Counted from the first letter of the stretch, positions 9,259 to 59,871 are shown. The stretch is 62,862 nt of DNA from Guillardia theta CCMP2712 (GCF_000315625.1 NW_005434596.1:1-62862); one strand, 5' to 3'. Numbers and translations are program-made. The notes: generated by a model from the letters alone, not told the origin.

Positions 9259-9380
9259 TTATAGTACTGCCGGTACACTCTAACTTGATGAATTATTAAA
9301 CCGGCGTACTTTTCGTGCCACCTTTTTTTGTCTGAGGCTTGAGCGAGGCTGACTGAGAAATCACTCGTGGCCCCTCGCCG
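9259..9380 (-). repeat. ~120-bp dispersed repeat, inverted copy of 47176-47293, with an internal hairpin and a T7 run
   Basis: The reverse complement matches 47176-47293 with few differences (ccacgagtgatttctcagtcagcctc..caagcctcagacaaaaaaaggtggcacgaaaagtacgccggtttaa..ttcatcaagttagag..accggcagtactataa). Confidence 0.95.
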
Positions 9381-46474: not shown

Positions 46475-47175
46475 CACTTCAGTTCGATTCAGAGCAAGAT
46501 TCAAGGAGATGAATTGAAGTGAAACATCTGGATATGAAACGTTAGAAAACAAGTGCTTCTGTTTTGCATTTCTGATACGAAACGACAAATTGATTTAAAT
46601 CATTGGCATCTTACCCGTACACAGAAACGATCCTTCTTGAAGACTTGCTGAAAATCAAAATGTTCAGGATGACACACAAGTATCTCAGTTGATAACGATA
46701 AAACATCGTTTGAATTCCACCCATCTTGAGGCGAACGAAAGGAAATTCCAAACACTTCTCGATAGGGGGTTTTGCATGAAATATGGAAGGATAGTAAGAG
46801 CAAACTTTGAAAGATGTGAATGAGTTCATCGAGCAGTGCATGGAAAGCTAAGCATGAGAGCTGCATGCAAAGGGCGCTTGATCTACTGAAAGCAGCGCAT
46901 TTCCTCGTCATTGCAACGGTTTCAGCATTGTAGAGTGAAAGTGTAGGTCCTGGCCCCATCGTTATTTGAAGGGGTGGGTGGTTTTACGTGGTAGATTGAA
47001 AGAGGGTAATGGGGTGCTATTGAGGGGTCCATGTCTCTGGATTGAAATGGTATCGAATGGGTAGGGTGGGTTGAGAGGACCTGCTGGGGGGATGAAAGTA
47101 AAGTAGACTGAGATGTGAAGGGGTAGGGGTAGTCGTTGACCGGGACAAGTTTGAATTTGAAACTACAGGAGCCTC

Positions 47176-47293
47176 CGGCGAGCGGCCACGAGTGATTTCT
47201 CAGTCAGCCTCCTTTCAAGCCTCAGACAAAAAAAGGTGGCACGAAAAGTACGCCGGTTTAATTCATCAAGTTAGAGCACCGGCAGTACTATAA
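47176..47293 (+). repeat. ~120-bp dispersed repeat abutting the Fanzor left end
   Basis: Inverted match to 9259-9380. Homology stops at the TA(A) at 47291-47293. Confidence 0.95.
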
Positions 47294-47473
47294 TGGTTAA
47301 GTGACACACTATGACCAATGGTGACCCAAAAATTAGAATCTCAAAAAAAACGTCGAAATCGCGGTGTGGTGCAAACCCCGAACGGTAAAACAACAAAGGA
47401 GCAACGAGAATATAGAATGTTGTGATTAAAAAAAAAGAACATCCCTGCAAATCCACCTGTACAAATCAATTCT

Positions 47474-47957
47474 TCCGAAGTCTAAACACCCGTCTGTTTA
47501 TCTATCAAAGTAGAAGTAGGGGTGGGTACCAGGTTTGTGGCTCAACAAACTTCGAATATTTCCCGCCTTCCGAAGTTCCCGCCTTCCCGCCTTCATCCGA
47601 AGTCTAACTACCCGTTTGTTTATCTTTCGAACTTGAGTAGGGGTGGGTACCAGGTTTGTGGCCTTCCCGCCTTCCCGCCTTCATCCGAAGTCTAACTACC
47701 CGTTTGTTATCTGTCGAACTTGGGTAGGGGTGGGTACCAGGTTTGTGGCTCAACAAACTTCGAATATTTCCCGCCTTCCGAAGTTCCCGCCTTCCCGCCT
47801 TCATCCGAAGTCTAACTACCCGTTTGTTTATCTGTCGAACTTGAGTAGGGGTGGGTACCAGGTTTGTGGCCTTCCCGCCTTCCCGCCTTCATCTGAAGTC
47901 TAACTACCCGTTTGTTATCTGTCGAACTTGAGTAGGGGTGGGTACCAGGTTTGTGGC
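47474..47957 (+). repeat. Higher-order tandem array: five ~66-bp cores with alternating 54-bp and 21-bp linkers (period ~208 bp)
   Basis: Cores TCCGAAGTCTAACTACCCGTTTGTT..GTAGGGGTGGGTACCAGGTTTGTGGC begin at 47474, 47596, 47684, 47804 and 47892. Confidence 0.97.
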
Positions 47958-48133
47958 TCTGTAAAGATTTCCCCGCCCTCCCGCCTTCTCTCCCTCCCTC
48001 CCATCCTCCCTCCCGCCTTCTCTCCCTCCCTCCCATCCTCCCTCCCGCCTTCCATCACTCCCTTCTTCCCGCCCTCCCTCCCTCCCTCCCTCATTCCCGC
48101 CTTCCGAAGCTCCCGCGTTCACCCTGATCAAAT

Positions 48134-50062
48134 ATGGGGAAAAGGAAAAGAGGAAAACAAAGAAAGTCTTGTTCTGATTCACAGACGACTGTCAAGATGT
48201 GTTTGAAAAAACATCTCAAACAACACACAATGATCGGTGTGATTGATGATTGGGTGAAACATATAAGCAAAATAAGCCATCGAGGTAGCATCATCTTCAA
48301 TCATCTATTGTTATGGTGTTTTGAGAAGGATTCAATGCAATGTGATGATACGTACATTACAAGGCTGTTTGATCAGATATACAATCGTACTAGAAAAGTA
48401 ACAGACAAAGAAAAAGAAGAAGGGATGCAAGAAGATACGGTCAAGACCAATGGTGGAGATAAAGTTTTCTTTCGGACCTGTTTTCTGATGGGTGAAAAAC
48501 GCAGAGGTAATGCAATTCAGTTTGATATTTTAGACGAGTTTTGGCAAGAAAAAGGGAACAAGTATCCACCAATACAACGCAGGAAAGAAGGGGATATTCG
48601 AGTACTGTACTATTCTGCTGATCAATATGCAACAAATTTCCAAAATTACATATTCTATACGATGGGACAAAAACAGACTAGATACATAAAGGAATGGGGA
48701 AAGCTCAATGGGATTTCTTCAGAAAAGGAGATACAGGATATACGGAATGCAGTAAACGGATGGAGCTTTCCACCAAAAACTCGTGTTCTCGAAAGACAGG
48801 ATGTCATTGATTTCATAAGGGAACAAAAAGAGATCATTGGATGGGACAATCATTATAACTTGTCATGGGCCCGTGACAAAATCAAGAAAAACCCTGATCA
48901 GCAAAAATGGATGCAATTACACATGCCAAATCTTGTCAAGTACCATTTTTCGGTTCTGAGGTTTTTGGAGATTCATGATATATCTGATCGATACACGATC
49001 GCTCCGATTTTTCAGATACGCAAACAATTTATTCGCGTAGACATTTGGGGTTTATTCTACATCATGGATCAATCTGGTCTGTTGCAATATTCAAAGGGTG
49101 GGAAAAGCAAATGCATGAAAAAGTTCACACAACAAAAACATAAGCGATTCTTGTCGGTGTTGAAGCTACAATCAAATTTGAGAAAGAAAGGGACAGTTGA
49201 TAGCATACAGACTGACGGAGTCGCACTCTGTGTGACGTTCAAGAAGAGAATACACAATGAGACAGACAATACTACTACAAAGAAAAGCAAAACAAGAGAT
49301 TGTGATGTGTCCTCAAGACGAGTTATTGCAATCGATCCTGGTCGCAATGTACTGATATGCGGTGTCGAGCAAATACCTGGTCAAGAAAAACCAAAGCAGT
49401 ATCGATATACTCGAAGGCAGTACTATCATGAGTCTCATATTACTCGGAATAACGCCAAGTTAGAAAAATGGAGACAAGGCATAACAGAGGAATCAAACGA
49501 TATTGCAAGAGTGTCAGCAAAAACGTCTCGGTTGGATCACTTTGAAAGATACATCGACACCGTGGTGAGACTAAGCGAGATCCTGTTCGAACACAATTGT
49601 CAAAACAAGTTCGCACGCCTGAAGATGGATAACTACATCCACAAACACAAGGCGATTGATACGTTCTTCAAGAAGATGAAAGGTAATGGGACAGATCAAA
49701 ATCCAATAATTGCATACGGTGATGCATCATTCGGTTGTACTGGGCGTGGAGAGAAGTCAGTGCCTGTAAAATGGATCAAAAGGCGATGTCAGAACTTCTT
49801 CGAGGTGACGGCAGTTGATGAATACAGAACGACAAAATGTTGCAATCAATGTCATCAAGAATTGTATGATTTGAGACGCAAACAAATCAACAAGAATGGT
49901 ATACTTGCTGACGAAGTGTCAGTGGTGCGGGGTTTGAAATGGTGCAGATCCACCAATTGTGTTCAAAACCGTATCAAGTCTCGTGATGTCAATGCTGCTA
50001 TGAATATTCTATTGTGCTACATGTCTCTACCAGCACGACCAGATTTTCTGAAACGGCCTTGA
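48134..50062 (+). CDS. Fz1: Fanzor (probably Fanzor1): TnpB/Cas12-related RNA-guided RuvC endonuclease, 642 aa
   Basis: TDGVALC motif; RuvC-I IAIDPG (D401); IAYGDASF; rearranged RuvC-II VDEYRTTK (E563); Zn finger C570xxC573..C604x4C609; RuvC-III RDVNAAMNI (D618); tail RPDFLKRP. The ORF is intronless, AT-rich, and has a basic NLS-like N-terminus. Confidence 0.93.
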   Translation: MGKRKRGKQRKSCSDSQTTVKMCLKKHLKQHTMIGVIDDWVKHISKISHRGSIIFNHLLLWCFEKDSMQCDDTYITRLFDQIYNRTRKVTDKEKEEGMQEDTVKTNGGDKVFFRTCFLMGEKRRGNAIQFDILDEFWQEKGNKYPPIQRRKEGDIRVLYYSADQYATNFQNYIFYTMGQKQTRYIKEWGKLNGISSEKEIQDIRNAVNGWSFPPKTRVLERQDVIDFIREQKEIIGWDNHYNLSWARDKIKKNPDQQKWMQLHMPNLVKYHFSVLRFLEIHDISDRYTIAPIFQIRKQFIRVDIWGLFYIMDQSGLLQYSKGGKSKCMKKFTQQKHKRFLSVLKLQSNLRKKGTVDSIQTDGVALCVTFKKRIHNETDNTTTKKSKTRDCDVSSRRVIAIDPGRNVLICGVEQIPGQEKPKQYRYTRRQYYHESHITRNNAKLEKWRQGITEESNDIARVSAKTSRLDHFERYIDTVVRLSEILFEHNCQNKFARLKMDNYIHKHKAIDTFFKKMKGNGTDQNPIIAYGDASFGCTGRGEKSVPVKWIKRRCQNFFEVTAVDEYRTTKCCNQCHQELYDLRRKQINKNGILADEVSVVRGLKWCRSTNCVQNRIKSRDVNAAMNILLCYMSLPARPDFLKRP

Positions 50063-50240
50063 ATCACACATGGGTCTGGTTATACTTCAACCTGTTCTTC
50101 ATAGAAAGGATGAAGTACGAGTCAGACACAAGGAAATATTGGCGTGTGGGTCTTCAATGATCCATAATTTCGACGGAAAATTTAGAATTTTGAAATTTTA
50201 TGTTTTGTGTCGTTTAGCTAATACAGGAGCCTCATACCCA
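50063..50240 (+). ncRNA. Putative Fanzor omega-RNA (scaffold to ~50223, guide from flanking DNA)
   Basis: Hand folding gives a long hairpin at 50071-50130, a closing stem TATTGGC(50137)/GCTAATA(50217), and internal hairpins at 50146-50165 and 50171-50212. The position between stop codon and right end is typical. Confidence 0.7.
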
Positions 50241-50819
50241 CTTACGACCATGGGGTACCCCTTCTAGAACACCAGAAAGCATGTTTCATTTCATTCTGCT
50301 CAAGGAAAGACAGCAGTCAACTTGTAGGGCTACTTGTACATTTCCTCATGCTGGAGGACAGCAGACCCGGTCTGGTCAGCTGCTGGTCAGACTGCCGCAT
50401 GTTACAAATGTTGAGCTGCTAGGCTTCATAGCAGTTGTTGGTTGTACGTCGTTCTGACTGAACTTCTCTGATGTTTCATGAGGAAAGGGTTCAGTGAATG
50501 TTTGTAATCTGCGCGACACTGGCAAGCAAGCTAGACGCAGAGGCGAGATACATGATCCGCGGAACGGGATGTACGTTCAAGATTTCGTCATGTTCATTGG
50601 AAACGTTGAACCATCAGGGTGAGAAATCACTTAATAATATCCACTAACACACACAAACACGCACGCACGCACACACAAAAGAGAGGGAGAGAAAGAGACA
50701 GTTCTGCTGCTCCAGCTGTTGGTGAGCAAGCTGCCATAGGTTGCTTCTTGTCTCATCTTCCCCCTTATATCGCCATCTCGACGACATGGACGAGTGAGGT
50801 CGGGGGGACGCGAGAGGCT

Positions 50820-53800
50820 CTAGAAGAGCTTCAGGTGGCTCGCCATGTCCCTGCGTCAAAGTCAATAGCAAACCAGCAAACGAGTCAACTGAGTCACGAG
50901 GACGCACCAAGGGACGAAGAGCTTCTTCTTCTCGTCGTAGATGTAGCAGAAGGCGTCTCCAGCCAACGCGCACGCGTCGACGTAGCTACACACCCACACC
51001 TCGAGCTCGCGTCTGACCATGAGCTGTCCGAGGCCTCCCATCTTGAAGGTGCTGTTATGAGTATCGAGGCTCGGAACGATGTCTTTCCAGGTGTGAAGCA
51101 TCTGACAGTGAAGGTACTTGCTGCTCACAAACCAGTACTGTGACAGCGCGTCGCTCGAGATGTTTGCCGTCCACGTCATCGTGAAACCCTGATACGCCAC
51201 GCTCTCGTCCGCCTCGAACAAAACCTCCAGCACCCGCGAGCTCGCCGTCACCGTCAGGCTGCCGGGCTTGTGCAGGCCCGTGAGCTTGGCGACCTCCGTC
51301 CTCCCGTAGCACTCCAGCGACGCTCCCAGGAGGCCGATGCACTCGTTGATCGTGAGGAAGTCGTATCCCGGCTCGAGGGCGAAGGAGGTGAAGTTGAGGG
51401 AGATGGAGGAGGCGCCTGGAGGCTGGATGATCCACCGGCAGTTGCTCCCGTCCTCGTACAGGCTTGACAGTGCCGACCCGTCGGACAAGGACCCTCTCGC
51501 CTCGTCAAACAGCTGGCACCGGCACTTGCCTGTGCAGGGCTTGAGGGCTGAGCTGCAGATGCTGTCCTGCAGCTCCTGACAGGCTAGCGCGTGCTCCCCG
51601 CTGTTGCAGACAGGGGTCGAGCAAGCCCTGCAGGAGGACCCGGAGACGTACTGGCCGGGAGCACAGCGAACCTTCTTGATGAGGATGCGAGTGTTCTGAC
51701 AGTACTGGCCTGATGACAGCGCGTACAGCTCAGCGTCAGCTCGGATAGACTTGGTCAAGCCGTTGAGGGCCATGACGCGACCAGCAGTCACGTAGTTGTA
51801 GTTTGACGTGGCGTAGACTGTGCCGTCGGACACCACGAGCTGCTGGAGACCCCACGGGTAGCGTGCGATGACGTCAACAGTGTCTGTGTCGTTTGGAGCT
51901 ACTTGCCAGCCGGCCGGCAGCTGGACCATGCCGCACTGAAGCCTCTGGTTGGAGCTCGAGACGGGTCCTTGCAGGGGGTCCCAAGGCTCCGTCATGTTGT
52001 CCATGAGCACGGCGTACTCGTCCCCGCTGCGAGAGGTGACGGCGAAGATCCAACCGCACTGGTAGAGCATCGCATCGGGATAGTCCTGCCTGCACGACCT
52101 CGTGATGTTGCACCGCATGGAGGCTGGCCTCACGACGACGTCGCTCTCCGGTGACGGCGGGGGCTTGCAGGCGAGGCATCGCGTGCCTGACTGGAAGTAT
52201 CCCGGCTGACAGCGCCAAGCGCACTCCTCGTCAGCGGCGTCGAGGAAGTAGGCGAAGTTGGGAGCGTTCATGCAGGGCACACAAGCGCCTTGGCTGCGGT
52301 AGTGACCTGTGCCGCATCGCCACTGGCAGACCTGACCGCTCGACCCGTCGGCTTCCACATAGAGAGCGTTGCTTGGCTTGGGATACCTCGGGTCGCACGA
52401 CGCGCATCCCTCATACGCCTTGTAGTATCCTGCCCGACAGGTCCATCCGCACCCGCCTGGTCCCGAGGAGGCTACCGCGTTGGCCGGTAGACTGCCCGAG
52501 CATGGCGTGCAGTCTTGATCGCCTCGGCCCTCGTAGCCGTCATCGCACTCGAGGCGCACAAGCAGCATCCGCAGGGCGTAGTATCCGTTGTCGCAGGACG
52601 AGAGGGCGTAAGAGCTGCCGCTGCGGTAGAGCATGTTGCTGAAGATGCTGGTGCCGGGCGTTTGGTAGCTCATGTAGTCCTGGTAAGGCTGCGCCGTCTG
52701 GTAAGCGACTCCGTTGGCGAGCACGACGGCTCGAGCTCCCCATGGGTACGACCCGGCGACTCTCACAGCTTCCTCGCTCCATGGCGCCAGCGCCCAGCCC
52801 GCAGGAGGCTGCTGGTACATGGAGCCGTCATGCTGACAGCTGAGGTTGAGCGACGTGGGAGCGACGTCATCCAAGGCCGCGTAGACCTTGCCGAGGTACC
52901 TCACCACGTGCGTCAAGCTGTTGCTGACGTTACACGCCTCTCCATGGCTCTCGCCGCTCGCGCAGGCCCACTGGCATGAGTTGGGCTGGTCCAGCAGGCC
53001 CGGGGTAGAGTAGAAGGCGTAGGGGGGGATGGGGTTCGTGCAGGGGAAGCACACCATCCACTCGGAGCTCCGGTAGAAGCCGGCGTTGCACTCCCAGGGA
53101 CACTTGCTGTCCGCATACTGGCTGGGGCTGGAGGGAAGAGCGTAGCTGGCGTTGGCAGGGATGGGGTTGGAGCAGGGGTAGCAGTAGGAGCCGGAGAGGT
53201 AGAACCCGGGAGCACAGAAGAGCGACATGAGAAGAATGTCGCTGCACGTACTCCAAGATCGATACATACCGTCATATCCGATCAGTGAGTTGGATCCCCA
53301 TCTATAAGGATAGTTACAGCATTGACAGCTGCTGGTGTACCAGATAGAGCTGTCGGATAGCTGGAGGTAACATACTCCCCACCGCTGAGTCGCGATCGCC
53401 ATCTGACTGTCCCAGGTGTTCGCAGCTATCGCCCAGCCGTCAGGGATGCTGCTGAAGGTCAATGGTGTGTTGCACTGGTAAGGTTCGTCAGGCCGGTGGC
53501 CTTGTAGGGTGGTGTAGTATCGGTTGCCGTACTGGAACATCTCGCACTTGCTGGCGTTGACATTGCTCCCTCCCCCCTGAGATTGATAGTGACCGAAGTC
53601 ACACGCCCAGCCGCATGCCGTCCCGTTGCTGCCCTCCCGCAGCCAGTGAGCCGCCCGCGGCTTCCTGCCCTCGCACGCGACGCACTGACCGTCCTTGAGG
53701 AGGTAGCCCGCGCTGCATCGCCACCCGCACTCTGTCCACGACCCGTTGACCCCTCCCGGCCCGTACGCTACGTACTCCGCGTGCTCCGGCGCCGTCTCGC

Positions 53801-54986
53801 ACGCCTGACACGCCTCGCCTCGTCGCGTGTAGCCGGGCTCGCAGGCCCACGGGCAGACGCTGTCGGCGTAGCGGCTGGGGTCCTGCTGGGCGACGTAGAG
53901 GGCATGAGGGGGGATGGGGTTAGAGCAGTTGCCGCAGCTCGAGTCGTTACGGAGGTAGTAGCCCGCCGCGCAGTACTGCGACACGAGCAGGATCGACCCG
54001 CACGATTCTGACGACCTGTACATGCCGTCGTATGACACCAGCGAGTAGCAGCAGGTAGACTGAGGCGACGACGACGAATAACACCGAGAGCTGTACCAGG
54101 TAGTGCTGTCAGACATCATTAGGGTGCAGGAGCGCCAAGGGTACATCCACGCTGTCATGCGGCTGTCCCAGGTGTTCGCAGCTATCGCCCAGCCTGCCGG
54201 GATCGCCTTCAGCCCTTGATTGCAGTTGTAGTAGTAGTAGTAGTAGTCACTATTTTCCCAGTTCCATGGGGGAGAGCCGTCGAGGGTGGCGTAGTATCGG
54301 TTGCCGTAGGAGCGCAGCGGCAGACAGTCTCCGTCTGCCGACGCGAAGTAGCCGAAGTCGCACGCCCAGCCGCATGCCGTCCCGTTGCTGCCCTCCCGCA
54401 GCCAGTGAGCCGCCCGCGGCTTCCTGCCCTCGCACGCGACGCACTGACCGTCCTTGAGGAGGTAGCCCGCGCTGCATCGCCACCCGCACTCCGTCCACGA
54501 CCCGTTGACTCCTCCCGGCCCGTACGCTACGTACTCCGCGTGCTCCGGCGCCGTCTCGCACGCCTGACACGCCTCGCCTCGTCGCGTGTAGCCGGGCTCG
54601 CAGGCCCACGGGCAGACGCTGTCGGCGTAGCGGCTGTGGTCCTGCTGGGCGACGTAGAGGGCATGAGGGGGGATGGGGTTAGAGCAGTTGCCGCAGCTCG
54701 AGTCGTTACGGAGGTAGTAGCCTGCCGCGCAGTACTGCGACACGAGCAGGATCGACCCGCACGATTCTGACGACCTGTACATGCCGTCGTACGACACCAG
54801 CGAGTAGCTGTATGTAGACTGAGGCGACGACGACGACGTACACCGAGAGCTGTACCAGGCAGAGCTGTCAGACATCATTAGGGTGCAGGAGCGCCAAGGG
54901 TACATCCACGCTGTCATGCGGCTGTCCCAGGTGTTCGCAGCTATCGCCCAGCCCGCCGGGATCGCCTTCAGCCCTTGATTGCAGTT

Positions 54987-55017
<31 letters not shown>

Positions 55018-58000
55018 GAGTAGTAGTAGTAGTAGTCACTATTTTCCCAGTTCCATGGGGGAGAGCCGTCGAGGGTGGCGTAGTATCGGTTGCCGTAGGA
55101 GCGCAGCGGCAGACAGTCTCCGTCTGAAGACGCGAAGTAGCCGAAGTCGCACGCCCAGCCGCATGCCGTCCCGTTGCTGCCCTCCCGCAGCCAGTGAGCC
55201 GCCCGCGGCTTCCTGCCCTCGCACGCGACGCACTGACCGTCCTTGAGGAGGTAGCCCGCGCTGCATCGCCACCCGCACTCTGTCCACGACCCGTTGACCC
55301 CTCCCGGCCCGTACGCTACGTACTCCGCGTGCTCCGGCGCCGTCTCGCACGCCTGACACGCCTCGCCTCGTCGCGTGTAGCCGGGCTCGCAGGCCCACGG
55401 GCAGACGCTGTCGGCGTAGCGGCTGGGGTCCTGCTGGGCGACGTAGAGGGCATGAGGGGGGATGGGGTTAGAGCAGTTGCCGCAGCTCGAGTCGTTACGG
55501 AGGTAGTAGCCCGCCGCGCAGTACTGCGACACGAGCAGGATCGACCCGCACGATTCTGACGACCTGTACATGCCGTCGTATGACACCAGCGAGTAGCAGC
55601 AGGTAGACTGAGGCGACGACGACGAATAACACCGAGAGCTGTACCAGGTAGTGCTGTCAGACATCATTAGGGTGCAGGAGCGCCAAGGGTACATCCACGC
55701 TGTCATGCGGCTGTCCCAGGTGTTCGCAGCTATCGCCCAGCCCGCCGGGATCGCCTTCAGCCCTTGATTGCAGTTGTCGTAGTAGTAGTAGTAGTAGTCA
55801 CTATTTTCCCAGTTCCATGGGGGAGAGCCGTCGAGGGTGGCGTAGTATCGGTTGCCGTAGGAGCGCAGCGGCAGACAGTCTCCGTCTTCCGACGCGAAGT
55901 AGCCGAAGTCGCACGCCCAGCCGCATGCCGTCCCGTTGCTGCCCTCCCGCAGCCAGTGAGCCGCCCGCGGCTTCCTGCCCTCGCACGCGACGCACTGACC
56001 GTCCTTGAGGAGGTAGCCCGCGCTGCATCGCCATTGGCACTCGTACTCGACCTCGTGTCTCATCGTCAGCTGGACATACTCAGCATGGGCTGGCAGCGTC
56101 GCTCGGTCACAAGCTACACAATGATCGGCTTGCTGCTTGAAGCCGGCGTTACACACGTATGCACAGGTGGAGATGAGCTGGTTGTCTGCTGCTATCAGAC
56201 TGCCATATGACGAGTTGGTAGGCAGCGCGTTACTGCAGGGCACACAGCTGGAGCCGCTCTTGAGATATCCCGGGGCACATTCGGTAGACCTCAGCAGAAC
56301 TCCCTTGTCACAACCATTTGCCTTGTACATGCCGTTGTAGGAGCTCAGATATCCCCAGCTGTATTGCTGGGGGCTGGTAGAGCTAGTGCCGCGAGCTGTG
56401 TACCACAGAGAGCCATCTGAAAACACCAAGTAGTACGATCCCCAGGTGAAGTACCAGGTGACGTACTGACTGTCCTGGTTGTTGGGGGCGAGCTCCCATC
56501 CTGCTGGTACCGGCAAGTACGGGTCGTCACGGCAGGTGTAGGGGTCGTTGGGAGCTCTGCCGCTCAGAGTCGTGTAGTATCTTCCGGCGTACTTGGTCCC
56601 GACGCACCTTCCGTTGCTCCTCACATACCCGAACCGACATGACCACTCGCACTGTCTCCCGCTGACTTCGCCTGCTGTGAAGTAGGCGAACTCTGGCAGA
56701 CTCGTCTCGCAGGCTTTGCATGCCCCGTCTTGGAGGTAGTAGCCTGCATGGCACGTCCAGCTGCAGCTCTCTCCGGGCTCGCTCGTGGTGTACACAGCAT
56801 TGGGAGGGGCTACCGAGCAGGCGACACAAGAGCTCCCGTAAGCATCCCTGTAATAGCCGGCGTCGCATCGCCAGTCGCAATTGTTCTTGTTTGCAGGCGA
56901 GCCGCTGCTGTTGTAGGTGGCGTGATTAGGCTTGTAGCTGCTGCACGGAATGCAGCGGGTCATGTTGGAGGGATCCCTGTAGTAGCCCGCGAGACAGTCC
57001 TCTGCTACCACCAGCACCGTCCCACAGCTGTCTCTTGACACGAACATCCCGTCGTAGCTGTACAGTCGCGACGTACAGCACATGCCTCCGTATCCTGTGT
57101 TCCATGCCGTCCCGTCCTCCAGCACGACATTGCTGGCCCCCCACGGGTACTGAGATACCACAGAGATGCTGTCGCCTGTGTTGGGCGCTATCATCCACCC
57201 CTCCGGCAGAGCTCTCGCTACCTCCCAGCTGCAGGTCGAGCTGTCGTAGGGAGCCCTCCCTCCCAAGCTCGCATAGCGCTGTCCGTTGTATCCTACGGTG
57301 ATGTCGTCGCAAGAGCTGCTCCCGCTCTGACGATAACCAAAGTCGCACGCCCACGAGCAGCCTGACCCCTCCCAGTGAGCGTTGGGAGGCAGCGAAGACG
57401 CGCAGGCCTCGCATCGCCATCCGTCGACCTCGCGATAGCCCGGCAAGCAGCTCCAAGCACAGCTGTCTGCCTTGCCCATCAGCCCGGCGCCCACGTAGAC
57501 GGCAGCAGAAGGCTTGCCCGCACACTTGGAGCACGTCGAGCCTGACGGGTAGAAGCCAACCTGACAGCTCCACCCGCAGCTGCTCGTCTCCTGAGGGTAG
57601 GGCGAGAGCACGTACTGTGCGCCGGAAGGGATGGTGTTGGAGCATGGGACACAGCGAGACGCGTTCGTCAATCCGCTTGCAGAGTCTGCAGGAGCGACGG
57701 CCATGTAGCCTGATGCGCATACGGGAGCGAGGAGCAGAACTCGAGCTTCGCAATCTGACGAGCGATAGTAAACTCTGTCATACGTCGAGAGATAGCCGCT
57801 GCTGTAGTACGAGCCCGGGTATTGCATGTAGTAATAAAACCAATAATACCAGTTATCTTCTGACATGACGCTGTTAGTGTAGTAGCTCGAGCTGCTGTCC
57901 AGCACAAGCCGAAGAGCTCCCCAGTCGTACTTGGCGGTGACGTTGATGCTGATCTCGTTGTCCGGAGCGATCGACCAGCCCGCAGGCAGCGGCAGGTACT

Positions 58001-59871
58001 CCTGCCATTCCGACACACAGCTCCACATGGAGTACTGCGACGTAGGACCGTACCCGCCAAGAGTCGAGAACACGTACCCCTCCTCTTCCACTACCTCCTG
58101 CCAGGCACAGGAGTCCGCCCCCTCCCCGCGCCCTGCCGACACAAACACAGCGTTGGCCGGCCTCTTGGTGCAGGGCATGCACATGCTCCCTGACTTGTAG
58201 AAGCCAACGTCGCACGTCCACCCGCAGAGCTCGTTGGAGTAGCTGGCGTTGCTGGGCTTCCCTTCGCACTCAGCGCAGCTCTCGCCTTTGAGGTGGAACC
58301 CGGGTTGGCATATCCAATCGCACGACTGCGATGCCGTAGAGAAGTCGGAGGAGTAGATGGAGTTGGGAGGGATGGAGTTGTTGCACAGCACGCACGGCAA
58401 GTCAAGCATCACATACGGCGACGGCACACCAGAGACAAGCAGACGAGCCTCACGGTCGGGCATGGAGAAAGACGTCAAAGTTGACCCCCTGCCGTCGCTC
58501 ATCATGTACATGGTCGAGAAGTAGGTGTTCTGCAAGCCGATTGCGACCCGCAAGGTGTTGTTGGCAAAGAAAGTCACCTCGAAGATGAGATTCGGATGCC
58601 CCGGGAGCCCCGAGGTAGACGAGGTCCCCTCGAACCTCACCACGTATCCCCGCATGTCTCCCTCCCTGGTGGGGGTCCCGACGATCAGCTGGGCTGAAGT
58701 GTCTCCAGCTCCGACAAACAGAGTCGGGACGTAAGGATTGCTGGCTGACAGGGAGGTGTAGGTCGACCAGGCTTGTCCGAAGGTCAGGTAGCTATTGGAC
58801 GATATGTACACCGATGATTGCACGTTGTTGCCTCCCACGCAGAAGGGAAACCCAAGGTCCGGCACTCTCCAGCTCCCGTCATCGACAGAGCTTGGCGAGA
58901 GGATGTAGGACCAATTTCTTCCTACCGCCAGGTCTGACTTGAGGTAGGACGTGTTGAGGATCGTCGCATTCGGAGGGCCTTGGAAGTGCGCAGGCGCTGG
59001 GTCGGCAGTCGCGGAGTCTCGATACCTCGTGGAGCAGAAGTCTGGGGTCTGACCTTGCGGGCATCCCACGTACACGATCAGTATCCGCATGTTGCAAGAC
59101 GCCGGCCAGTACAAGCCGTCGCTGCTGCGTAGAGAGGAGCCTCCATTGGAGCAATACCAGCAGTTTGTGCGATAGTATGAGCCGCTTTCGACCAACATGT
59201 AATCGGTTCCCCAAGTGTACTGACTGATGACTTCTCTCGATAGCCAGTCATCCGGAGCGATGGCCCAGCCCTTCGGCAGCCGCAAGGCTTGTGTCTGGCA
59301 GTCTTCGTTGCTGCTTGTCCTCTCCGACATGTAGTATGTGCCGTCGAGGGTGGCAAACTTTCTGCCGCCGTACATGACGCTAGGAAGATCGTCTCCGCGC
59401 CGCTCTCCATCATCCTCGGATATCTGATAAATGTAAGGTCAGCAGCTGATGCTTCAGAGATCGTCATGTTACCACGGAGTTGTCGCGGAGCGAGTACTTG
59501 CTGTCCGCAGATCCCACAGATCGCTGGAGGTCGACATGAAGCGCTCTCAAGTGCGCATTTGATGATGCAAGCGAAGTAGAAACTCCTTTGCGATGAGCTC
59601 GATCGCCTTGACTCATCGGGCGCAGCTTGTCAGAAGCCGGCATCTTGCTTGAAGAGGAGCGCAGCTGACGGTCAAGAGAGTCCTCCTGAGCGATCAATTG
59701 CTGGATCTCCATCAGGCGTGAGGTGATGGGGGACGAGGCAGATCTCTGAGAGGGGCTGGTAGGCTGTTGATGCAGAGCATCGTCTCCTGTGGCTGAAACA
59801 GAAGCAGAGACAGAGAAAACAAGAAGGAAAGCGAAAACAATCCCAAGACTCATCAGGCTGATGCGAGCCAT
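50820..59871 (-). CDS. Giant secreted cysteine-rich repeat protein, paralogue B (intact, ~2,980 aa; NIDO-like, TNFR-like repeats, C-terminal CUB)
   Basis: ATG 59871 with signal peptide. Introns 59424-59472 and 50851-50907 restore the frame, and the last exon reads ..W-DMASHLKLF*. CUB motif CRWIIQPP..ISLNFTSFALEPGYDFLTI..FEADESVAYQGF. No C-terminal TM seen. Confidence 0.9.
53590..56033 (-). repeat. Three intragenic tandem repeats (periods ~759 and ~789 bp), each with a (TAC)n poly-Tyr microsatellite
   Basis: Anchor gccttcagcccttgattgcag at 54205, 54964 and 55753. (GTA)n tracts of different lengths follow each anchor. Confidence 0.95.

Follow-up and report, generated by a model that had tools for sequence, protein, structure and literature searches.

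What kind of mobile element carries the Fanzor reading frame of a Guillardia theta locus, and how did this copy come to lie where it does? The locus belongs to a 62,862-nt stretch of strain CCMP2712 (NW_005434596.1:1-62862); we refer to the whole stretch as the window and count all window coordinates from its first letter. It is very likely that the window holds one copy of a young, multi-copy, non-autonomous 2.93-kb transposon encoding an intact Fanzor1 nuclease, and that this particular copy arose by one-ended copying. The system type, Fanzor1, is already known, and the family is an uncharacterised one within it. Fanzors are compact eukaryotic RNA-guided nucleases relevant to genome editing, and to our knowledge only a handful have been characterised. 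The family described here supplies a naturally intact enzyme of 642 amino acids (aa) whose D-E-D site is canonical and which is closer in structure to SpuFz1 than to GtFz1, which edits poorly.

The Fanzor1 gene occupies 48134-50062 on the plus strand as one unbroken 642-aa frame with no intron. A previous annotation of this DNA, made from its letters only (the sequence-only reading), had proposed this uninterrupted open reading frame (ORF) together with the catalytic residues D401, E563 and D618 and a zinc finger, and all of these are confirmed. The three residues lie in the RuvC-I (IAIDPGR), RuvC-II (VDEYRTTK) and RuvC-III (SRDVNAAMN) motifs, respectively, and are unchanged in 46/46 aligned homologues, the alignment on which both the invariance of residues and the family profile rest. 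Between RuvC-II and RuvC-III, the cysteines C569/C570/C573 and C604/C609 mark the zinc-ribbon/TNB region. Among the homologues, 38/46 are recognised by Pfam PF07282 (Cas12f1-like TNB), the best at E = 1e-10; the 642-aa protein itself scored E = 2e-4, below the cut-off. The N-terminus is basic and disordered (predicted local distance difference test, pLDDT, under 50), and its stretch KRKRGKQRK resembles a nuclear localisation signal.

Single-sequence searches were uninformative, so that profile and fold comparisons were required: neither an NCBIfam search with the 642-aa protein nor phmmer against all PDB chains returned a match. An exhaustive HMMER search (E<=1e-3) showed the family to be large (1827 cluster representatives), its closest homologue outside this genome bearing a Hanusia phi label. 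When compared to the PDB, the 46-homologue profile matched exactly the three solved Fanzor1 proteins, PpFz1 (1e-29), SpuFz1 (1.7e-28) and GtFz1 (8e-20), across REC, WED, RuvC and TNB, in an alignment that spans nearly its whole length (profile positions 20-579). The AlphaFold2 model built from the homologue alignment reached a pLDDT of 90.2 and a predicted template modelling score (pTM) of 0.89. In the Foldseek comparison to the PDB, the top 7 matches were all Fanzor1 structures (E from 7e-20 to 2e-17), with SpuFz1 the best (E = 7e-20, template modelling score, TM, 0.65-0.71) and GtFz1 at a TM of 0.53; Cas12h, Cas12f, Fanzor2 and TnpB ranked far lower (E about 1e-4 for Fanzor2 and TnpB). Given the profile matches to solved Fanzor1s and a Foldseek list topped by Fanzor1 structures, the 642-aa protein is shown, as judged by profile and modelled fold, to be a full-length Fanzor1, and the class assigned to it earlier is borne out by homology to the solved Fanzors.

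It is also shown, at the level of sequence comparison, to belong to a family other than that of GtFz1, as the sequence-only reading had suspected for the characterised G. theta Fanzor, because the single-sequence search finds no solved relative; the TM of only 0.53 agrees with this. Identity with GtFz1 is ruled out by the lack of a phmmer match to 9CER, by the presence of D618 where GtFz1 has N658, and by flanks of the form ATAN instead of TTAA. Two further Fanzor families in the genome (C72 type and C23 type) were considered as GtFz1, and neither is GtFz1.

The gene sits in a eukaryotic multi-copy transposable element with shared ends. We searched the 87.1-Mb nuclear assembly (669 contigs) for copies, ends and transposases, and identified 9 full-length copies, 7 of them with an intact ORF, and more than a dozen partial copies at unrelated sites. 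The element proper, a non-autonomous one-gene transposon of 2927 bp, extends over 47294-50220 (plus strand), with boundaries common to 7 left and about 22 right ends. Homology at the left end begins at 47294 (TGGTTAAGTGACACA). The right terminus lies at window 50223 (..GTTTAGCTAATA) in every genomic copy; this alignment of copies, which had been suggested as a check of the ends, places the earlier right end, and thus the approximate guide start, correctly within 1 nt. The left terminal inverted repeat (TIR; TGGTTAAGTGACACA, 47294-47308, plus strand) is identical in 11/15 positions to the reverse complement of 50206-50220, the right TIR, which reads TAGCTAAACGACACA on the minus strand; random pairs of 15-mers from the element reached this level in 0.03% of trials. 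Imperfect TIRs bounded by TA had been described before: the TIRs and the TA dinucleotides (47291-47292 and 50222-50223) are indeed present, whereas an extra base separates each TA from its TIR and the repeated flank measures 4 bp. The span first given, 47291-50240, consists of the element, flank bases and about 17 bases of the presumed guide.

Within 47294-50220 we found no coding sequence besides the Fanzor1 ORF and no transposase, in agreement with the first description. Upstream of the gene, a non-coding leader (47470-48114, plus strand) combines 2.3 units of a 208-bp tandem repeat (47470-47959) with a CCCT-rich tract behind them (47972-48114). Copies differ in how many repeat units they have, and nowhere in the element is diversity higher than in this leader (4.3-4.8%). 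This region could serve as a promoter or as a spacer. Pairwise diversity between genomic copies was 0.5% in the ORF (0.39%/0.36%/0.74% at codon positions 1/2/3), 1.0% at the left end, about 4.5% in the repeat leader and 0.15% in the 160 nt of 3' non-coding sequence, the least variable region. The Fanzor1 element family, by these figures, appears to be very young and under mild purifying selection.

All 7 young left flanks (7/7) read ATA plus one variable base, after C or T, giving the consensus YATA(N). Among the 5 canonical copies on which the flank-repeat count rests, 4 carry the same variable base after the right ATA, with the repeats ATAA, ATAG, ATAT and ATAA. Since the base next to TA varies, yet equals the base after the right ATA in 4/5 copies, we take the flank repeat to be 4 bp long. 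In the window copy, ATAC (50221-50224, plus strand) stands at the position of the family's ATAN repeat and differs from the left ATAA, because the left ATAA came from a donor.

The donor can be followed in the sequence left of the element. The 118 bp at 47176-47293 (plus strand), which end in the donor's ATAA flank repeat (47290-47293), form a transduced donor left flank whose sole other genomic copy lies at window 9259-9380 (minus strand, 92% identity); the homology stops exactly at ..ACTATAA, the left end of the element. The block formed by the 118 bp and the element is bracketed by an exact 12-mer, TACAGGAGCCTC: the left copy of this target-site duplication (47164-47175, plus strand) abuts the 118-bp segment, and the right copy occupies 50222-50233 (plus strand). 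The boundary of the 118-bp segment was set independently of the 12-bp repeat. The 118-bp flank homology ends where the element begins, and the whole block lies between the 12-bp repeats; the donor copy therefore sat in a paralogue of the 9259 site. The original target, as reconstructed from the junctions, was AAAC[TACAGGAGCCTC]ATACCC, and the window copy is not a product of canonical cut-and-paste. The empty site GTACTATA^CAGGAGCC proposed by the sequence-only reading never existed, as it joins sequences that were never adjacent, the left 118 bp having been imported from the donor. For annotation, the lesson is that neither the target-adjacent motif (TAM) nor the empty site can be read from a single copy. 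We found no paralogous empty site, the flanks of full-length copies being without paralogues among the loci compared; the C14 copy adjoins a satellite at 32 nt and is not inside it.

The window copy has counterparts elsewhere. We counted the left-end motif 7-8 times in the genome, against about 22 occurrences of the right-end motif, a ratio of about 1:3; many copies start at arbitrary internal positions, while all of them reach the right end. Five copies have direct repeats abutting both junctions: 12 bp in the window copy (TACAGGAGCCTC), 10 bp in the C6 copy, which lacks its first 7 nt, 12 bp in the C191 copy, a 47-bp fragment, 11 bp in the C27 copy, and about 20 bp in the C101 copy. Four of these 5 repeats begin with ATA and that of the window copy begins with TA. 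We favour the explanation that these odd copies arose by one-ended copying at the DNA level, begun at the right end, because all copies stop exactly at the DNA terminus and carry neither a tail nor any right flank of a donor. For the window copy, copying would have started at the right end, passed the left end and continued for 118 bp in the donor flank, after which the copied block would have been sealed into the target with a 12-bp duplication.

Two observations stand beside this pattern. The only left-anchored fragment seen is a lone 41-bp left end after ..TGTATAT (G000:C191:90001-90041, L063). A second Fanzor1 family in the genome (2.66 kb, L059:60-2720), with TTAA/TTAT flanks, has right-end-anchored truncated copies too; one of them (G000:C53:368854-369565, L077) has TTAA+ACTAC at both junctions, and its 5 extra bases also match the element at the breakpoint (microhomology).

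An alternative origin of the long duplications is that they are scars of the nuclease itself. An empty target would be cut by Fanzor at 7-20 nt from its TAM; the break end on the right would then copy the element from a filled template, beginning at the right end, synthesis would abort, and end-joining to the unresected left end would leave the product TAM + p1..pk + truncated element + ATA + p1..pk. The duplications do start at ATA (TA in the window copy), and the 7-17 nt duplicated beyond the motif agree, once any trimming is allowed for, with the cut distances published for Fanzor1s, 14-21 nt (PMC10432273). The TTAA+ACTAC junctions arose in a second Fanzor family with a different target, TTAA, and in Chlamydomonas the same syndrome is frequent in Fanzor carriers and was found in 1/200 copies of non-Fanzor relatives (PMC3627910). 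However, the window copy carries a 118-bp foreign flank, so its template was ectopic and the donor's guide would mismatch the target; 2 of the 5 duplications have no preceding pyrimidine; and duplications of 44-443 bp have been reported in Chlamydomonas (PMC3627910). On this evidence we regard an origin by abortive copying after a Fanzor cut as unlikely, and we put forward only tentatively, as a rather improbable reading, that right-anchored copies with 9-20-bp motif-starting duplications are in vivo footprints of Fanzor activity. The right-anchored syndrome is seen in three transposon types: the Fanzor1 element, the second Guillardia family (TTAA) and the Helitron2-type elements of Chlamydomonas. 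If the scar explanation were true, the syndrome would belong to the nuclease cargo and not to any transposase, and genome sequence alone would report on a Fanzor's natural function.

Truncation at the 5' end, variable duplications of 10-20 bp, a target motif at the 3' junction and 5' transduction are also classical signs of target-primed reverse transcription, and the right-end-anchored copies, the window copy included, might be retrocopies made by an enzyme of the long interspersed nuclear element (LINE) type at nicked ATA targets, the transcript having started 118 nt upstream in the donor. This is improbable, given that all copies end precisely at the inverted repeat plus ATA, with no poly(A) or microsatellite tail, that right flank of a donor is missing from all of them, where Fanzor transcripts would be expected to run past the end, and that the duplication of the canonical copies is fixed at 4 bp and their ends are inverted. 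One-ended copying at the DNA level is therefore the origin that we retain for the right-anchored copies.

Which enzyme moves the canonical copies is a separate matter, and here a second family with the same ends is informative. The ends common to the Fanzor1 element and this sister family read TRGYTAARYGACACA, with 35 end-motif matches in the genome. The sister family, recovered by a degenerate end-motif search, is non-coding and 2.4-2.5 kb long, with copies 99% identical to each other (G000:C14:255941-258476, C157:23929-26451, C199:42681-45108 and C12:718796 onward) and perfect 15-bp ends that read TGGCTAAGTGACACA on both sides. Its flanks are CTAG/CTAG, CTAG/CTAG and CTGT/CTGT. Because the sister family has the ends of the Fanzor1 element, it probably uses the same transposase. 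A perfect 36-nt palindrome adjoins one of its ends.

Tc1/mariner-IS630 elements are recognised by a 2-bp TA target-site duplication. The sequence-only reading took the Fanzor1 element for a passenger of such a transposase, with a TA duplication, the empty site GTACTATA^CAGGAGCC and a TAM read from 47284-47292. TA is present at 47291-47292 and 50222-50223, the last bases of 7/7 young left flanks are ATA and one more, and there are two DDE_3 loci in the genome. The variable base is repeated in 4/5 canonical copies, however, so that the repeat is the 4-bp ATAN; CTGT is duplicated besides CTAG in the sister family, whose ends are the same; and for the window copy the model is contradicted outright, since its left flank is the imported 118 bp within a 12-bp duplication. 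The proposed genome search for a mariner-like transposase with matching TIRs gave only the 2 DDE_3 loci (C345:4420 and C7:893922), neither of which lies near any of the 35 end-motif matches (PF01359 was left out of this search). We consider mobilisation by a Tc1/mariner-IS630 enzyme very unlikely. We take the mobilising enzyme to make 4-bp duplications, which excludes Tc1/mariner-IS630; movement of canonical copies would depend on a trans-acting transposase of this 4-bp kind.

That the host has domesticated the gene, or that it is a dead relic, its ends being coincidental in either case, a reading for which the missing transposase and the lack of a full-length mRNA in the RNA data could be cited, is scarcely conceivable and contradicted already by the copy structure, with 9 full-length and more than 12 partial copies at unrelated sites, identical boundaries, 0.5% divergence, and inverted ends common to a second mobile family with 99%-identical copies.

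How the nuclease of this young transposon might be guided can be predicted by analogy with SpuFz1, GtFz1 and the insect-virus Fanzor1s, from which the RNA-tail, guide and cleavage steps are taken. The predicted guide-RNA (omega/reRNA) scaffold, placed at 50040-50223 (plus strand) after SpuFz1/GtFz1 (PMC10432273), overlaps the last codons and crosses the right inverted repeat. A structured 3' tail, expected from the first description of a definable scaffold, was recovered: the fold of the last 224 nt (50000-50223) beats shuffled sequences with a z-score of -3.3, and a subterminal hairpin (50171-50212) overlaps the right inverted repeat. The low diversity of the 3' non-coding part (0.15%) supports the predicted guide RNA alongside this fold. 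The last ~180 nt (about 50040-50223) would be transcribed into this scaffold RNA, which would read on 15-20 nt into the flank, from 50224 or 50225, as the guide. The predicted guide segment is 50224-50246 (plus strand). Its first base would be 50224, or 50225 should the scaffold include the 4-bp repeat, as is reported for other Fanzor1s (PMC10711439); the genome holds no second match to this 23-mer, even with up to 3 mismatches allowed. The RNA-protein complex would cut guide-matching DNA beside a YATA(N)-like motif, the TAM predicted from the left-flank consensus of the family, with which the earlier expectation of a TAM ending in TA is compatible. Under the TnpB homing model, the target would be the site emptied when the element is excised. 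With its sharp right end and a predicted YATA-like TAM, the family is directly testable.

Several observations weigh against parts of this interpretation. The 4-bp duplication rests on few copies, and one of the 5 canonical copies reads ATAC/ATAA. About half of the truncated copies have no duplication, and some of them may therefore be plain deletions. No partner transposase was found among the DDE_3 loci, with Helitron_like_N or in the sister elements; the latter, in which no ORF exceeds 100 aa and Pfam recognises nothing, are therefore non-autonomous too. The TAM-contact residues of SpuFz1 (Q129, Q130 and N133) are not kept in the 642-aa protein in the profile alignment; since these residues are not conserved, the likeness of YATA to the CATA motif of SpuFz1 is not evidence for the TAM. 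Over the predicted 3' RNA the copies are 99.85% alike, too similar to display covariation. RNA sequencing (one run, about 6% of it read) gave no guide RNA and no full-length mRNA, and no sense RNA ending beyond 50223 among the reads examined. Its reads fell only at 50146-50223, mostly from a truncated copy on another contig, and contigs from 3 further runs, only guessed to be RNA, span 49057-50223 and go back to truncated copies. We assign these reads and contigs to truncated copies on other contigs because flanks and variants identify them.

One truncated copy has a transcript of another kind. At G000:C82:64573-65460, an antisense host transcript enters from the right flank and receives its poly(A) tail within the right end; 37 reads have a poly(T) loose end at 50181, and the reads fall within window 50181-50223. 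This Fanzor relic supplies a host poly(A) site.

An Rfam search over 46800-50600 gave nothing meaningful. A 2047-nt contig (L075, JGI sample 3300016466) encodes an 87%-identical, 630-aa homologue (P0002); about 147 nt are missing from it, taking in the final codons and the greater part of the presumed RNA scaffold, and it retains the terminal hairpin, its end reading ..GTTTAGCCA. The contig of a further homologue, P0004, stops 76 nt past the stop codon. In the window itself, 640 bp downstream of the element, a 2837-aa open frame unrelated to Fanzor1 (50862-59375, minus strand) is made up of long, near-identical Cys-rich modules with tyrosine runs of variable length.

Among known systems, SpuFz1 of Spizellomyces punctatus (PDB 8GKH, 9CEU-9CEZ) is the best structural match and a strong profile match. 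It has the canonical D-E-D triad, a similar size and a single-gene, non-autonomous element with inverted ends, and its experimental TAM, CATA, resembles the YATA left-flank consensus of the Fanzor1 element. The two proteins are only about 17% identical, however, the TAM-contact residues of SpuFz1 are absent from the 642-aa protein, and Spu-1 has inverted repeats of 30 nt, compared to 15 bp here. Right-end-anchored, duplication-flanked copies of Spu-1 are not reported in PMC10432273. GtFz1 (PDB 9CER-9CET) shares the protein class, the overall fold and, apparently, the host genome. It has a non-canonical third catalytic residue (N658) and the TAM TTAAN, and its loci are reported to be without inverted repeats (PMC11423790, PMC10432273), whereas D618, flanks of the form ATAN and clear inverted ends characterise the 642-aa family, which has no single-sequence match to GtFz1 and a TM of only 0.53.

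The closest published parallel for the duplication comes from the dictyostelid Sola2-Fanzor1 chimeras, which have imperfect inverted ends of 12-21 bp and 4-bp duplications (ATAT, AAAT and ATTT; PMC3627910). They share with the Fanzor1 element the Fanzor1 cargo, the short imperfect inverted ends and the AT-rich 4-bp duplications, whereas the sister family here also duplicates CTAG and CTGT, and no Sola2 transposase was found, no search aimed at it having been made. For the right-anchored copies, the parallel is with the Fanzor1 elements CRe-1,2,3 of Chlamydomonas reinhardtii, for which 3' overabundance, 5' truncation and "one-ended transposition" were described (Bao and Jurka 2013, PMC3627910), along with duplications of 7-19 bp that directly follow the target motif and, in some copies, captured sequence from upstream of the consensus 5' end (PMC3627910). 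The G. theta Fanzor1 element shows the 3' excess, the 5' truncation, the variable duplications and the upstream capture too, so that 3'-anchored, 5'-truncated copies with variable duplications after a target motif are a Helitron2/CRe-like feature present here. CRe-1,2,3 are assigned to Helitron2, and their full-length copies insert after TTTT without duplication (PMC3627910); in contrast, full-length copies of the G. theta element have symmetric TIRs and a 4-bp repeat, which count against Helitron2 membership, and a subterminal 3' hairpin is present. A search for Helitron_like_N (PF14214) gave no match, the controls being blank too. A TIR element with a 4-bp duplication thus shows the one-ended copies first seen in green-alga Helitron2-type Fanzor elements, and the shared syndrome raises the question whether the nuclease cargo, rather than a transposase, is its cause.

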